Positions 1 through 11,800 of a stretch of DNA of 64,000 nt are shown piece by piece. The stretch comes from Tubulanus polymorphus. Taxonomy: Eukaryota; Animalia; Nemertea. A program made the position numbers and the translations under genes. The notes beneath the pieces were generated by a model. The model made no database searches, was not told the DNA's origin, and saw only the letters and a program-made list of their open reading frames with translations. The stretch is taken from contig NC_134030.1 of NCBI RefSeq assembly GCF_964204645.1, forward strand, positions 9,947,222 to 10,011,221. Direction: 5' to 3'. Position 1 is the first letter of the stretch, and every line of letters starts with the position of its first letter.

Positions 1-3000
1 AAAATGAGGATCATGGAGGTGGATATAAACAGGATCAGGGCAATTCAAACCTTTCAAAACAGATCTTAAATGATTTTTAAATTCCCTTGGACAATCCCAT
101 GCTAGTGTATCAGCATAACACAGTTTGTTACTTTTTGGGTAAAAAACTGCTAGTGCATAATGATTGGCAACAACATGTCCATAAGAATTTAGAAATACGA
201 AATCGTTTTGGGTGCCAACATGCAGGAAAAAAATTAGTTTATCACAACTTATGAGTGGATTAGGACCGAATCTTTTATATAAATTTGAAACATATTTCTT
301 AGCATCAAATGTAAGTGGCATCATAAATGCATGAATATTACAGTACTGTTCATTTATCATAGATGCAAAAGCATTTAACACAGATCCTTCAAACCATTTT
401 TGATTAGTCATCGTCTGAAGTTCTGATACAGATACGCTATTATTATTACCAACTGGAAATTGTTGAGAGGGTTTTAAGGAAAAGAGCATATTTGAAAATG
501 CTTGAATCTGTTCCCAATCGACTGAATCAGTGGGGCTTAAAGGCTTACTATTTACCCAAAGATTCATGGCAAAAAGATCTTGTTGTTTGGTTTTAGCATA
601 ATGTAAGAAAAGAAACCTATTAATCTGATCAATAGAATAGCAGCCTGTATCGAGTCTCACATGGATATTAATGGAAGGGTCACGGACAATCCTTGACTGC
701 ATCTGTGCTTTTATGTCCTCCAACTGATTTTTGTGGGGCATAGTGGGGGCATCATCAGCCAAATGACATGAATTAGACATGTCACAAATTCTGAATGACG
801 TGACCTTTGATGGCATAACAGGAGGAATTTTCAAAAACTGATAGTCATTGAGGCACATTTCTGTTGGATTGTAACTAAAATTTCTTCTACATACATGTTC
901 ATCATCAGAATCATTCTCATCACTATCATCAATTATGATTGGTTCGATACCTCCACCACCTGTGATACTTAGCTGTTTTTTGTTTTCCATCCAGCTATCT
1001 TCCTGCATCTTTAATCTTTCTATCCTTTCTTTCGAACTATCTTCCTGCATCTTTTCTGCTTCCTCTATCGTTCCTTCCGAGAAATTGTCACAAGCCGCGT
1101 CCTTTCCTTCTTCCTCCATTGTCCGCCTGAAATACACATTATCAACTCACTTTTTTTAGACATATGAATAGATAGAGTATGAAATTACCCATATAGGCCT
1201 AACATAAAACATGGGTATCTCTGAGTCATTTGCATTAAGTCATTTAGATTTGTAGGTACTAAATTAATTGAATTATGTTGTACTTACATTTCAGTATGGT
1301 TTAAACTAACATGGTCTAGAAGATCTTTCCAATTGGTGAATTCAACTCCGCAAAAACATGTCGAGTCAGCAGGATCCGTCTGTGGATGAATAACCTAATG
1401 TGGAAGAGCACATTAATCTGTTTTTGCTTCAACATCTAAGCAAAAATAACAAAAATGAACCCGCATCTCGCAGAAAGGGCATCAAACTTACATGTTCCAC
1501 TGACTTCCTTTTTCTGTTAAATCTTTTAGTATTGTGACAACTTCTATTGTAGCATCCCTGAATATGAAAACAAAGCTTTACAGCATAAATCATACCAATA
1601 CCAATGAATTTCTATAATTTCATTTCGAGAAACATATTACTCACGTTCTTAGTCTGATAAAAAGGAGTAAATAATTGAGGCTTTAAACAAATAGCAACAC
1701 CAGCCACATCAATTTTAGTCATGTACTGGAAAAAAAAGACAGATTTGTGCATGCACAGCCTTTAGGTAATTGTGAAATAAAAGTGACCAAACTAATATTA
1801 AATCATAAGTTCTTGAGATGATATGTACCTGGTCGAATGTGAAAAAGGCTCTTTGATCTTCACAACAGAATTGTTTCCTTGTATGATGCGCAACGTCAAA
1901 ACTGCTATACTGGATTGAAGGATACAAAAAACTGTTAAAATATATCTAACTTTATAAAGATAAATCACGTACAAATCACTTAGGAAAACAACTTTACCAC
2001 TATTGTTGAATCATCCCATGCTCTTGCTTGATCATCCTTCAATTTGTTTTTTGCTATCAGCTATCAATATGATTCATTAATTCAATGCAAGGATTTTGAA
2101 TAAAGTGGTTTCGTATTCAAGTTATAAAAACTAATTGCAAATCATTCATTTTCTAGGATATCAATGCTAAATGATTACCTTTCGTCGATGGACTGCTCTA
2201 CTTCTTTGCATCTTTTCAATCTCATATGGAAAGTATTGAGGGCACCTGATTAAGAATCATTCATTATTTCCAGTACAATCATAAAATTTATGTAGTTTGC
2301 ATACCTGGTAATTGGATAAAATAATGCAATTCTACGTACATTTCATCTTCATTTTTCAATAGCAGTAGTTCCATTATCCTGTTATTTATGAACTGATTTC
2401 CCTTACGGCTGGGGTGTAACAAGTCAGTCCTAGATCACAAAATTTAGAAAAAAACAAGTTAGTTTAAATCGCGAAAAAATGCACATAACCTACTGGGCTT
2501 ATTAAAATTAAACGATTACTTACGGTGAAAGGAGATCTCTTGAGAAGTGAAAATCAACGAACTTTACACCAAGTGTAAAGCATTCGCGGTGCAGCATTTC
2601 ATTGTAATGAAATATTTTTGTGTCAGCATCGAAACTTTAAAAAAGAAAGAAATTTAAAAATCATTACATCGATCATAAATATAGTACTTCAAGAAAAATC
2701 TATTCTTGATACTTACTCATCACATCGAGGAAAAAGAGCTGGTACAATGATGGTCCCAGTACATTTATAGAGCAACAATCGAATTAATTCAACGTGTCTT
2801 CGCAGAACAATCTCAAGCGGGACATCACGCGTCATATTATTTGTTCCAACATGGACGATTAGTTGTTCCACATTCAGCATCTTCACCTTTTTCAATTCTG
2901 TAATATACAACTAATCAGTAACCCAATGAAAATGAACAATATAAATCAGTACTGAACCGAGAAATTACCTTCCATCAATGTTTCAATGGTTCCTCCGGGG

Positions 3001-3083
3001 CACACGATCCTTGTCCATTCAAATAAGCCTACACCATCTAGCCCAGCATACTTTAAAATGCTGTCTGCTACGAGACCAATACG
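1..3083 (-). CDS. Spliced SGNH hydrolase / C2H2-like finger / Ulp1 (peptidase C48)-like multidomain protein; 3' end beyond window, start codon unresolved; probable transposon-borne gene
   Basis: Phase-compatible GT-AG exons (minus): 3083-2969, 2897-2717, 2634-2524, 2429-2340, 2245-2179, 2060-1998, 1909-1829, 1725-1645, 1557-1492, 1394-1288, 1126-1 (>=696 codons, open). SGNH blocks LVADS / PGG / HVGTNN / DLLHPSRKG. Finger CFCGVEFTNWKDLLDHVSLNH. C48-like motifs ELQTMTNQKWFEGSVLNAF, NHYALAV and YADTL. Confidence 0.8.
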
Positions 3084-4719
3084 CTACAAAAAAGATTATT
3101 TGTCAGTCTCAGGCCAATATCACAGGGAGGTGTGAGAGAGCACACTGGTTACTGTAAGACCCTACTACATGCAAAAGAAGTGACACATATATGTATATCA
3201 ATGTGATAGAATTGATTGAAAAAATTGTGCATAATAGTAGCTAGTGCCCAAAAATAGAACACAGTGTTATTGAAGTGAAAATTTCTAAAATCCTCTGAAG
3301 CGGTGCTTATTTGGTAGCTACATGGGTATTCTAATTGAATAAGCATAAAGATAAGCGTGCACACACAGTAGCCTATGCATAAACAAGGGCCAGTTTCACC
3401 TTCACCTAAAAGTCCTGCAGTGTGAAGACTAACTTGTTCACCTAAACCACCTCTACCAGGCTGTGGAAGGCCTAACATCAGGCACTAAATTAAAAGATTC
3501 CTCTAAATCAAATTATCTATAAACATCCTCTTAATTGCAGGCAGACTGATTCAGGGAGGGGTGCAGCCCAAAATAGGGCATACATATCAGTATCATATAT
3601 AATTAAAAATCAAAAGGGCACCAGATCATCAGAAAACATAATACCTATATTTTGGAAGTAGGCCTACAGAGAACATGTTTTGGAATATAAGCTTTTTAAA
3701 AATACTTGTTGATATTTTTAATTTTTCCTTTAAATTTCATTGCGACTTAAAAGTTTTAAGGGGTGTACACCCCTGTATACTCTCCTGATCTGCCCCTGAA
3801 TTGCCACTTAACAAAATTTCTCAGCTTAATTGTTGGCTAACTAGCTCAGTGAAACTGGGACCAGACCTAATGCATACACCCTCAGTGGCCAGGGCCAGGA
3901 TTAAACAGTTAGGCTACGTATATAAATAAAGGAATGAAAAGTACTTATCCTGAAATTGGTTAGGCTATCTATCTGCAACAAGAAATACATTTTCATTGAC
4001 TCTGAATACAGGGAACTACCATTCTTCTGTTTCGAGGCCTTAAAATTTATTGTTTATTTTTTGTTGCTGGATTTGGAATGGTTGTTGGAATATTTAAGGC
4101 CTAGTAGGTGGTGACTGTGTACGGGCAACATAGGCCTATACCCAGTGGCATGGCAATGGCATGCCACTGGGTACCCACTACTGCACTATAGTATACTGCC
4201 TACGGCTACTGCGACTGGTGGTTCGGTTGGCAGAAATTACTTGTTAACATGGGGGGGGGGGGGAGGGGGGAAGTAAGCGTGGATGAAGACAAATTAATTT
4301 AGCCGAGTAAGTAGCAAGCAAGTAAAGTAGTGGCAGTACAGTAGGCCTAGCGACAATGTGAGTGTGGTGGTAACGTGGCCGTGGTGGCAATAACAAGACT
4401 CCAAAACTGGCAAAAGCCAAAATTAAAAAGCCCTGCCGCCGCGCGGTCGCGACGCCTCGCCTGCACCACCGTGTACGATCCTCGCGGCGTTCACCAGTGT
4501 TACCCAGTGAGTTTTTTATAATCTTGCAATCTACCTCTTTTTTCAAACCAATATTCCCACCAACTGGTCCGGAGACAAGCTTAACACGTTCGGAAAACAT
4601 GATTCACAATCTTTTAATCAACAGCCAGCAAGAATACACTTGACAGAAAATTCAAATTCAGCGGTTAACCGTTAAAAGTGAGTTGTTTAGCTGTGGGAGT
4701 AACAAAAAGGCGATCTTGA

Positions 4720-4779
4720 TGACGTCACTAGCCATCGACCAAAACAGGCTTTCAACCTTTTGCAGTTTAAAGATGGCGG
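4720..4779 (+). promoter_or_regulatory. STT3B proximal promoter/5'UTR motifs: CRE (TGACGTCA) and YY1-like AAGATGGCGG over the start codon
   Basis: TGACGTCA at 4720-4727; AAGATGGCGG at 4770-4779. Motif match only. Confidence 0.4.
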
Positions 4780-8800: not shown

Positions 8801-11800
8801 CGCCAGTTCGAACAGATCGGCAGCTAGCGGCCTACTCCTGACTGAGCAAACGTAAACGTTTCTCTTCAAGTTCTGTCTGTATCTGCGAAAATTGAAACTG
8901 TATATTCGCAGCAGCAATTTCATGATAGGGAAACTGAAGAAAAAGTTCTCCATTTTACATTCTTCATGTCTGCGACTTCTTCTTAGACGCCTTTGCTCTT
9001 GTCGAAGGGAGGGAGCTATAGCTTGTCAGAGAACCCCCACCAGGGGGGTGGGCTGCGGCTGATTTATAAGAAAAATGTCTTGTGGGGGAGGGTGTTTTAG
9101 ACGTTCAGTTGCGATGCATAAAGGGTTAAAGATGATACAATAAGTAGGTAGCGATTTTGTGTATGATAAATCGTGGTGAATTGTTATAAGTGGCTCGGTT
9201 GTATCGATCAGAAATTGTTCCGATTCAGCTGTCGTGTTCAAACGCCGAGGTATTGAACATTTATTCACCAAGCGTTTTAGGTACTTAGTTTTGCTGGCGG
9301 CTTTGTGCATCCTGTCCCTACCTCTGATTTGATACCTACAGGCATGCATGGATTGCCTCAACCCCCTACAGACGTAACATCGGTACATTATCACCATTCT
9401 TCAAATTTTTTACCGTCTGGACTTCAACTCAGTGTTCAGGACCAGTAGCTCATAAATGAATCACTAACTTGAAAGTCATTTTTTATCTCCAATCTTTCAA
9501 AGTGGATCACCAAGACTTTGTACTATGTCTGAACGGCGCCAGAGCGATACCAACACCGTGCTTAGAAGGCGCGCTAACTGTCGCAAAAAATAGTGACAAT
9601 CAGGTTATCAAGCCGCATGTTATCATCAGTTCTAACTGAGAGTGAAATAATGCAAGATGAGCACGGTTTTGAGAAAATCTGTGTAAAAAATTTCAGTATT
9701 TTTTTACGCCGTGAAAACCGTTACAATAATGTTTGTATACATCGATACCTAGCATGCCTAGGGGTTCTGTGCGAGTCGATGTGCACTAAGTCATCAATAC
9801 TGGCGTTTCAAAATGAGAATTACAAACGTGAGTTTTGGCTTTCATTTTGTAATCAAATATATTTCATGACTCTTATTCTTATTTTTGATAAATCTCGAAA
9901 ACTATTTTTGAAAGGCTGTGCATTACGTCATCTGCAATGTGTCGAATATATTTCATGACTTTTTCATGACTTGATTTTCTATTCGTAGATTTTTCATGTT
10001 GTTTTTCTTTTTTGGGCGATCTATTATTGAGAGGATGCACGGTACTCCGTCAATATATATCTGGGCTAACTATTGATTCTATGATTATTCATATCATATT
10101 ACTAATTACTGACGATATTAAGTAATATATATCACGTGTTATTTTTCAAGGCGTCATAATTTTTCAAGTTCGTTGTTGTCACGTTTCTAAATTTGTTTTT
10201 AGCCTCATAAATGCCAGCTGCGCGAGCTGCGAAAGGGTTTCATGAATATAAAACGGTCCACGATACAATATTCTCCATATTTCACCTACGTGACAAACAC
10301 TTGTGTGAAAATCTCGAGCAAGAGTTTTTTGAGTGCTGTGCGATCGTGACGTGGCAGTGTTTCATAACATACTAATGCGACAGCGTTGTTATCAGCTGCT
10401 GAACGAAACTGTGATAATTTAACACGCGCAAAACCTGTGGCTAGGATTTGTTCTCTTTCTTCCTAAATATAAAGCTATTTTCGATGTGAAGATAAACACG
10501 TGTCACCCGAGGCTAGATATTCCCGCTGTTTTCTTTCCATTATTGTCTCTATATCGTATGATCACGATGGAAATGAAAGTATACTATGTATGGCCTATAG
10601 TATACTATACTAGAAAGCTGCATTCGGGCGATAGCAGGGGCGGATCCAGGAGTTTGGAATGGGGGGCGGGAGGCATCGGGCGTGAGCACCGCCGGTGCGA
10701 ATCCCCGAGGGGGTCAAGTGGTCCTACCCCAGAAAATTTTGAAATGTAGGATGCCGTATGCAATTTCCAGGCATCAGAAAACAAAATCTGCACCTGTTGT
10801 CTTCTTCAAAACCTATATCTCAGTGAAAATAAGGGGGGGCGTACGTCGCTTCCGGAACAACTATTCACACGGGTGCCAACTTATTCTAGAAGTGATTCAC
10901 TTCGCTTTGTCTCAGCATTGTTTATTTACTTTCGGAGTGGATGAAGTACAAGAACGCGCTCTCTAATCAGGTGCGGGCCAAATTTGATTCGGGCCTGATC
11001 CGTGCCGATTTGGCCCGGGCCAAATCATCTCTGTACGATAGCGGCTATAGAATGAACATCACTGGAGATTTCCTTCTGTCACTCTTTCAGTATGTGTCGC
11101 CACCTAGGTGCAGGACGAAATTTCCAGTGACGTTGGGTGATGATGTCGCTCGTGATTTCGAATTTAGTACATTAATTTCCCTGATAGATGAATTTCCATA
11201 ATTCTTAAATCTTAAGACTAGTCTGAAGTTATTAGATTGGCTTTAGAACTAAGTTGTTGCTTAGTAGCATGACAGGGCAACTGGCGCCTGAAGTTTATTG
11301 AACTGTAATGTGGTTCCACTGTATAACTTCATAGCCTGAGTCCGATAAGCTCCCGCCAGTGCTGCCATCTTCAATTGTGGATCGCACGACAACAAACATT
11401 GCTCATATTGAGATCCGTGCTGCCACGCTGTGGTCAAAATATGAACTAAGTTATCGTGAGATGTGTTGTCATCGGTATGTTGAAAAGAGGATTGCTCCAA
11501 TAATAATCAAATCATTTCTCCGTCTATAATATCTGGTTCAAATCCCGGCGATGAATTTTTCGATTTCGATCCCATTGGGTCACATGTGGAAGGCAGAAAA
11601 CCCGTTATCTATTGCTGCTTTGCAGCTATATTCATTGTAATGTGGTTCCACTGGAACTTGGAAATCTGATAACTTTCTCGTCCTCCCAACTGATACGATG
11701 AACTGCTGTACACGTATCAGTTTAGATGGAACATATTTTCTGGCCTTCTGAAGTTCATTATAACATGAGGTTCCACACACGGTAGTAAATACACTTGAGA

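Follow-up and report, generated by a model that had tools for sequence, protein, structure and literature searches.

The question raised by the left end of the 64,000-nucleotide (nt) window analysed here (G000:C6:9947222-10011221; AT-rich eukaryotic DNA in an assembly of 268 Mb and 77 contigs) is whether a chain of short exons, in which an earlier note had recognised an SGNH hydrolase, a C2H2-like finger and a Ulp1/C48-like protease domain, belongs to a host gene or to a mobile element, and whether these domains form parts of one protein. Our results indicate that window 1-4763 is probably part of an autonomous, recently active Mutator-like element (MULE), a cut-and-paste transposon with a single multi-domain transposase gene. 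The observation made in the earlier note was confirmed, and its interpretation was partly supported.

The element spans G000:C6:9940346-9951984, and window 1-4763 represents its right-hand 41%. Its length was set at 11,639 bp because homology with copies elsewhere in the genome broke off sharply at window 4763 (query 3563) and at L011:3125. The left terminal inverted repeat (L011:3125-3168, left of the window) differed from the right one by a single mismatch over 44 bp. The repeats of classical MuDR elements are long, and those of the present element are shorter. Target site duplications of 9 bp flanked all ten copies examined, with a different sequence at each and with one copy offset by one base; Mutator target duplications measure 8-11 bp, usually 9, and the length found here is thus typical. 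When window 1-1200 was compared with the genome, at least 12 copies with approximately 100% identity were found. At least ten copies were full-length (97-100% identity), accompanied by deletion derivatives, and the whole 1,918-codon frame was kept in seven copies that were approximately 100% identical, the other copies being broken or internal-deletion derivatives. The youth of the transposon, which the earlier note had proposed, was thereby borne out. A single-copy host gene had been named there as the contrary outcome of a copy-number check; the host-gene reading was rejected because of the copy number, the inverted repeats and the target duplications.

Some further features of the copies were recorded. 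Internal-deletion derivatives of ca. 2 kb that retain both element ends, e.g. G000:C4:1004859-1006953, represent natural non-autonomous copies. Subterminal tandem repeats of 166-171 bp (3.2-3.5 copies) lie at L011:4402-4999, left of the window and 3' of the stop codon, and most other copies have ca. 458 bp extra at L011:5206-5211 as compared to the copy in the window.

The big minus-strand frame enters the window at 1146 and continues past the left edge for 1,536 further codons, giving 1,918 codons in total (L013:393-6146, minus strand). Beyond the edge, the last exon encodes the Gln/Cys part of the protease, a GATA-type finger, the DDE core of a MULE, a putative SWIM finger, C2H2-like fingers and a PHD finger. 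The order along the whole protein is SGNH module, linker, C2H2-like finger, C48 domain, Ser/Thr-rich repeat linker, GATA-type Cys-rich region and MULE core, followed by the SWIM finger, two C2H2-like fingers and the PHD finger. Hence the leftward extension that the earlier note had suggested did reveal a transposase, in the same last exon; the description as an accessory gene did not hold, as the domains seen in the window are encoded by the transposase gene, of which they form the N-terminal third. Mutator was among the Ulp1-carrying groups named there, and it is to this group that the element belongs.

The model of the core folds as a MULE transposase. The AlphaFold2 (AF2) model had a predicted local distance difference test score (pLDDT) of 85, and its ten nearest ESM-Atlas clusters were all PF10551 MULE, including the FAR1/FHY3 type (template modelling score (TM) normalised by query 0.56-0.67; 225-294 residues aligned). 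The language-model neighbours of the core were likewise MULE/SWIM clusters (score 0.96). Based on conservation and spacing, the candidate DDE residues are the Asp of GIDVKHD, the Asp of QHDKD, which is followed by CNFH, and the Glu of TDNITERKF. The motifs GxDxKxDF, QHDK...LCNFH, LTNNxTERKF and CxC-x12-CxH were kept in relatives at 30% identity, and the SWIM-type CTCEAFIMIGQPYFCKH was conserved in P0002, P0003, P0004 and P0007. A Pfam search with the long frame returned a PHD finger (E 3.5e-5), a weak GATA finger (E 0.0026) and nothing else; the GATA finger of the relative P0004 was matched at E 6.6e-6. A word-index protein search retrieved only the window's own protein and one relative.

Relatives of the transposase differ in what stands around the core. 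A third MULE family in the same genome (G000:C6:15723173-15728515, minus strand; L063/L064) has a 1,787-codon frame that is 37-47% identical to the window element. P0007 (2,251 amino acids), a database relative, carries two tandem Ulp1-like domains ahead of the MULE core, and P0002 and P0003, from another organism (an intronless gene in L032), have Pro-rich repeats in place of the esterase region.

Exon-by-exon reading with the phase carried reproduced exactly the chain described in the earlier note: 11 exons on the minus strand from window 3083 to 1, every acceptor being AG and every donor GT; the introns measure 71-161 nt, and the codons, exactly 696, include no stop. Since a loose search for in-frame chains yielded 252 alternatives, such a chain is by itself weak evidence, and independent support was therefore sought. 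The copies within the family were uninformative on the reality of the exons because they decay neutrally, exons being preserved no better than introns. A diverged sister family on contig C7 (G000:C7:~9325000-9335800; L059/L060), whose transposase part is 32-41% identical to that of the window element, supplied the comparison. Ahead of its transposase exon, it carries E1-E4 (58-64% amino acid identity) and E9 (56-58%), arranged in the same order. Nucleotide similarity between the two families was confined to E1, E2, E3 and E9, and the introns did not align, while the positions and phases of the E1-E4 introns and the E1-E3 donors were the same in both (GT-AG). Over the SGNH exons, nonsynonymous divergence (pN) was 0.25 and synonymous divergence (pS) 0.75, giving a pN/pS of ca. 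0.34 with the synonymous rate (dS) saturated. On this comparison, the exons for the SGNH and C2H2-like parts are genuine coding sequence, conserved under selective constraint. The C2H2-like finger reported previously accordingly stands as a coding exon, E9; the Pfam zf-C2H2 match of this finger was below the cut-off (E 0.043), and canonical C2H2 fingers occur at the same place in P0002 and P0003.

The gene model of the earlier note had no start codon, and the exon at 4600-4535 supplies an ATG. It is kept at the matching place in the C7 family (tblastx E 0.002), begins 163 nt inside the element end and is followed by a first intron of 1,451 nt. The exon at 4600-4535, being conserved in the C7 family, was preferred to another candidate first exon at 3478-3434 (MLGLPQPGRGGLGEQ). 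If all exons are used, the gene is a single minus-strand unit of ca. 12 exons and ca. 2,254 codons (718 + 1,536), the 5' part of which is intron-rich (ten short introns) in contrast to the last exon, which spans 5.7 kb without an intron. For the last four exons, the automatic gene call P0001 has identical junctions. The basic stretch in E8 is possibly a nuclear localisation signal. Two peculiarities were seen in the C7 copy: the start of its big exon is tandemly duplicated (two matches 1,638 bp apart), and its E4 is split by 230 nt that the copy in the window lacks. The coordinates of all features in the window are listed in Table 1.

Table 1. Features of the element and of its transposase gene within the window.
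Feature	Position	Strand	Basis
Right terminal inverted repeat, 44 bp	4720..4763	.	Local alignment of the two ends; copy boundaries
Right 9-bp target site duplication AGTTTAAAG	4764..4772	.	Left copy at L011:3116-3124
Probable first coding exon, MFSERVKLVSGPVGGNIGLKKE (MFSERV...)	4535..4600	-	ATG-to-donor candidate; phase-0 GT donor; in frame with acceptor 3083
E1: SGNH block I (LVADS, Ser nucleophile) and block II (CPGG)	2969..3083	-	58% amino acid identity to C7; motifs and splice sites kept
E2: SGNH block III (HVGTNN)	2717..2897	-	58% amino acid identity to C7; weak PF13472 and SGNH-structure matches
E3: SGNH middle part	2524..2634	-	Amino acid identity 61% to C7, 42% to L061; splice sites conserved
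E4: SGNH block V (TDLLHPSRKGN, Asp and His)	2340..2429	-	Exon profile matches SGNH structures; D..HP..G kept in C7 and L061
E5 (MCPQYFPYEIEKMQRSRAVHRRK)	2179..2245	-	58% amino acid identity to C7 in the frame of the earlier note; GT-AG
E6a, optional	1998..2060	-	Phase 0-0; canonical sites and open frame
E6b, optional	1829..1909	-	Phase 0-0; canonical sites and open frame
E7, contains the start Met of P0001	1645..1725	-	P0001; 37% amino acid identity to C7 (weak)
E8, basic stretch KRFNRKRK	1492..1557	-	P0001 junctions; 50% amino acid identity over 18 residues to C7 (weak)
E9: C2H2-like finger, CFCG-x12-H-x4-H	1288..1394	-	56-58% amino acid identity to C7
Last exon (5.7 kb), in-window start; acidic linker, then Ulp1/C48-like domain from ca. 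660	1..1126	-	Extends to L011:5393
Codons for the catalytic His (160-162) and Asp (109-111) of the C48-like domain; spacing 17 residues	109..162	-	Family alignment; Ulp1 alignment

The four SGNH blocks named in the earlier note were found in order at the places given there, with ADS and PGG in E1, GTNN in E2 and DLLH in E4, so that the Ser, Gly, Asn, Asp and His are all there; the C7 family has ADS, PGG, GTNN and DFLH. The SGNH profile and structure searches were run with single exons only. E2-type exons gave weak matches to positions ~60-112 of PF13472 (Lipase_GDSL_2; E 0.06-0.26) at the same positions in three paralogues, one of which also matched the SGNH-like OSK domain of Oskar (E 0.05). 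When a three-sequence E2 profile was searched against the PDB, the two best matches were the SGNH structures 2hsj (E 0.016) and 4c1b (E 0.21). The E4 profile matched best residues 148-170 of 4c1b (E 0.042), then the GDSL protein 4q7q (E 0.12) and the acetyl esterases 5b5s/5b5l, and all of its structure matches fell at the C-terminal block V. The structure 4c1b is titled ORF1-ENCODED PROTEIN, and its code is given in the paper on the ZfL2-1 esterase (PMC3905857). The presence of an SGNH-type module is quite probable, because two exons match one esterase structure colinearly and the catalytic residues are under purifying selection, and its fusion to the transposase is likely.

Sequences resembling this module occur elsewhere in the genome. 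A single-copy relic at G000:C4:9934000-9941000 (L061, ~3161-3733, plus strand) has E2-, E3- and E4-like SGNH exons with 33-42% amino acid identity, the same intron places and the retained motifs GTND and DGIHP; the esterase module could have come from this relic, or the relic could be an old relative. A multi-copy repeat truncates it at ~L061:3757, and the long frames of this repeat (L061:3839-7000) resemble a Polinton/Maverick-type protein-primed DNA polymerase. Besides, more than 100 places in the genome match Lipase_GDSL_2 (e.g. G000:C2:17698839, C1:1678555 and C10:4494091), and many of these loci are multi-copy frames of 440-510 codons with a CCHC knuckle upstream of the esterase, like the ORF1 (first open reading frame) layout of non-LTR (non-long terminal repeat) retrotransposons.

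The Ulp1/C48 identity of the protease domain was borne out by fold and by profile. The His of NHY and the Asp of YADTL, whose codons are as described in the earlier note, correspond to H406 and D423 of P0001, and the Gln and Cys predicted there to lie left of the window were found in LQSCSSVCG (P0001 Q479 and C485), their codons lying 57-59 nt (Gln) and 75-77 nt (Cys) past the edge (L011:9941-9943 and 9923-9925). In a 63-sequence family alignment, H167, D184, Q240, C246 and G247 were nearly invariant, the Asp following the His by 17 residues and the Cys following the Gln by six. The AF2 model of the domain had a pLDDT of 93.3 and a predicted TM score (pTM) of 0.89. The top 28 Foldseek matches were all Ulp1, SENP1/2/3/5, NEDP1 or fungal Ulp1-like proteases, with 1euv at E 6e-9 (probability 1.0) and SENP2 at 1e-8, and TM normalised by target was 0.65-0.70. 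The family profile matched Ulp1 (1euv) at E 2.6e-9 and SENP1 at 2e-8, the RW(L) motif of the family aligning to the Ulp1 RWLND segment and its H(W/F)...YxDSL to the HW...DSL segment. Judged by model and alignment together, the C48 fold with an intact catalytic set is established. Nine of the 63 relatives matched Pfam Peptidase_C48 at E up to 0.01 (best 4.6e-5), and an exhaustive profile search collected 1,236 relatives, many of which are 300-600 residues long and match only the C48-like domain.

Between the catalytic Asp and Gln there is an insert of ca. 55 residues (P0001 ~424-478; window 106 to ~56 nt left of the edge) with nearly invariant H216, C229 and C233 (alignment A3). The conserved residues may form a metal-binding site; we know of no such feature in Ulp1/SENP proteases. 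A different Ulp1-carrying element is represented in the genome by two 1,758-codon frames that are Pfam-positive for Peptidase_C48 (G000:C4:26328541-26329038 and C2:24206705-24207202; E ~1e-12).

Several results weigh against the reading of the locus as a MULE whose gene carries all of these modules, and they fall into two groups, the first of which concerns Pfam. PF10551 and PF00872 did not match the 1,918-residue frame at E up to 0.1 or P0003, P0004 and P0007 at E up to 0.01, and PF04434 did not match the SWIM-type motif. PF02902 was not matched in the element's protein or, in a genome-wide six-frame scan that included all copies, at the locus, and a scan of the same kind with PF13472 gave no match at any copy of the element. 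Because the Pfam MULE models do not match, the core is regarded as a diverged MULE branch. The missing PF10551 match would also suit an element of another Ulp1-carrying superfamily such as Zisupton (KDZ), which the earlier note had named among such groups. PF18758, the KDZ transposase family that marks Zisupton proteins (PMC9297572), was unmatched in the element's protein and in P0003, P0004 and P0007, however, and the duplications of 9 bp in ten of ten copies differ from the 8 bp of Zisupton (PMC12730594). With all ten nearest folds being MULE as well, assignment to Zisupton or a similar group is very improbable.

That the C48 family is too distant from Ulp1 for Pfam is also of interest for the function of the domain. 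Clan-CE proteases of adenovirus, poxvirus and African swine fever virus (ASFV) cut polyproteins, and the C48 domain could, by analogy, be mainly a cis-acting processing protease that cuts the ca. 2,254-residue protein into esterase, protease and transposase, instead of a deSUMOylase. This would be compatible with the MULE reading. The fold search also returned ASFV pS273R and monkeypox I7L (E 5e-4 to 1.6e-3), and the protein is a very long series of independent modules with low-complexity linkers. On the other hand, in both the fold and the profile search Ulp1/SENP proteins led the other matches by three to five orders of magnitude, and the substrate-tunnel Trp aligns with the Ulp1 RWLND segment. 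Cleavage sites of the Gly-Gly type were not found, no search having been aimed at them. We consider a mainly cis-processing role rather unlikely.

The second group concerns the esterase exons. The single-exon SGNH evidence is weak, with best E-values of 0.016-0.26. E1 had no Pfam or PDB match as a single exon, and its profile found nothing relevant in the PDB; E3 had no SGNH profile match as a single exon. Exon by exon, Pfam gave just the weak zf-C2H2 and Lipase_GDSL_2 matches, and phmmer with E2 alone against the PDB gave only chance leucine-rich repeat matches. With BLAST and a home-made hidden Markov model of the ORF1-type esterases of this genome, the block III segment was the only match among the single exons. 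E6a and E6b, i.e. two of the 11 exons, had no cross-family match; they are optional because both are phase 0-0, and they may perhaps be unused. P0001 begins at the Met in E7 and omits the esterase exons, dropping ca. 250 residues. No esterase was found upstream of P0002 in L032, where a Pro-rich repeat frame stands, or in P0003, P0004 and P0007, and the esterase and C2H2 exons were not matched within 7.5 kb upstream of the third family at C6:15.72 Mb. Because these distant relatives and the third family lack it, the esterase is not a core part of the lineage.

The start of P0001 and the relatives without an esterase (P0002-P0004 and the third family) would agree with two products, in which exon 0 to E5 encode a small protein of their own or serve as an alternative 5' leader and the transposase starts at the E7 Met. 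The exons between E5 and E7 being unsupported, the link between the two is merely formal, because E5 ends and E7 starts in phase 0. Against this, the chain is in frame and open through all exons with or without the two optional ones, there is no in-frame stop between E5 and its donor, and the C7 family has the same exon order before the transposase exon. Moreover, the first exon lies close to the element end, and a second promoter was not evident, no search having been aimed at one. The absence of a fusion is accordingly considered unlikely.

A further explanation is that the esterase exons are a captured fragment of a host gene or retrotransposon, carried passively in the manner of Pack-MULEs and without function for the element. 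MULEs are known to capture gene fragments (PMC6431247), the contrast between the intron-rich 5' part and the intronless last exon would be in keeping with capture, and the relic at C4:9.94 Mb shows the same exon layout in a single copy. This explanation does not account for the purifying selection between the two families, nor for the catalytic residues and splice sites, all of which are kept, nor for the frame being open into the transposase, and passive capture thus seems quite improbable.

The fused transposase gene favoured here would operate as follows. All exons would be joined into one mRNA. The DDE core would excise and reinsert the element, producing the 9-bp duplications, while the GATA, SWIM and C2H2 fingers would bind DNA and the PHD finger would read chromatin. 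The C48 domain would be an active isopeptidase, which may strip SUMO (small ubiquitin-like modifier) or a related modifier off the transposase or off repair or silencing factors at the donor or target site, or may cut the giant protein itself. That it counters SUMO-dependent silencing, as the earlier note had proposed, is speculation. The esterase may work as in non-LTR ORF1 proteins, i.e. as a weak acetyl or lipid esterase that binds phospholipid, here without dependence on an RNA intermediate. We give about even chances to the specific proposal that a DDE cut-and-paste transposase, in one protein with a Ulp1-type protease, has at its N-terminus an SGNH esterase of the retrotransposon type as an integral domain under selection.

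To our knowledge, no role has been settled since 2003 for the ORF1 esterase domains of retrotransposons. If the esterase is indeed part of one DDE-transposase protein, its service to mobile elements would be independent of an RNA or ribonucleoprotein (RNP) intermediate. It could then act on a target that both classes of transposon share, for instance membranes or the nuclear envelope, chromatin lipid or acetyl marks, or host defence. A selected esterase in a DNA transposase gene would argue for an RNA-independent role, as set against the published ideas of RNP assembly and membrane targeting (PMC3905857). The element would also provide a tractable DNA-transposon system for probing the esterase: seven of its copies are intact and identical, its ends are clean, and the excision and reinsertion of mutants without esterase or protease activity could be scored directly in a simple cut-and-paste assay. 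For annotation, the locus illustrates that a gene behind ten short introns can be missed and that Pfam can be blind to all three enzymatic domains of one protein; the 1,236 relatives of this Pfam-blind Ulp1-like/MULE family are largely unannotated.

Mutator/MuDR transposases with Ulp1 and PHD have been published for hydra, lancelet and plants (Bao, Kapitonov and Jurka 2010; PMC2836005, Figure 1e and Discussion), and the plant KI-MULEs and CUMULEs are cited in that paper (Hoen 2006; van Leeuwen 2007). The present element resembles them in the combination of MULE DDE core, Ulp1/C48 and PHD, in its terminal inverted repeats and short duplications, and in its multiple copies. It differs in having, ahead of the protease and on exons separated by introns, an SGNH esterase-like module and a C2H2-like finger, and in that the C48 domain is too diverged for PF02902. 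The comparison with these elements draws on their published descriptions. The earlier note had called the pairing of esterase and deSUMOylase unusual; this holds for the esterase, whereas Ulp1 and PHD in Mutator were already published (PMC2836005). In the open-access literature, with Repbase Reports outside the search, we found no report of an SGNH module in the gene of a DDE cut-and-paste transposase, and an esterase on a cut-and-paste transposase appears to be undescribed.

CR1, L2, RTEX and Penelope elements are known to carry SGNH esterases in ORF1 (PMC3905857), and a GDSL ORF3 is known from LTR elements of rotifers (PMC5408684). The four-block layout of the module is the same as in the non-LTR ORF1 esterases, E2 and E4 match 4c1b at blocks III and V in order, and the HxGTN(D/N) block is similar to that of the ORF1 esterases of this genome. 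A PHD finger is found in the same protein both here and in CR1-like ORF1, to go by a title cited in PMC5408684. In contrast to the non-LTR ORF1 esterases, the module is carried here by a DNA transposon, which has neither an RNA intermediate nor an RNP. It has ADS instead of GDS in block I, is interrupted by introns and is probably fused to a transposase; the homology is weakly supported at the level of exons and does not imply an origin from retrotransposons. An SGNH hydrolase is also carried and multiplied by a DNA transposon on the platyfish Y chromosome, where a Helitron captured the host gene (PMC4021074). In that case the carrier is a rolling-circle element and its cargo a captured host gene, whereas here the SGNH module would be a domain in the frame of a DDE transposase, selected across families.

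As compared to Ulp1/SENP proteases (1euv, 1tgz and 2iy0), the C48-like domain is alike in fold, in the order and spacing of His-17-Asp and Gln-6-Cys, and in the W(L/F) and H(W/Y/F)...DS/TL motifs, while identity is only 13-16% and the element has the insertion of ca. 55 residues with its conserved His and Cys. With Zisupton the element shares the format of a large multi-domain transposase, but it has no PF18758 match, its duplications are 9 bp rather than 8 bp, and its core has a MULE fold. The Ulp1 and PHD part of the element is a very diverged new member of the known Mutator type.

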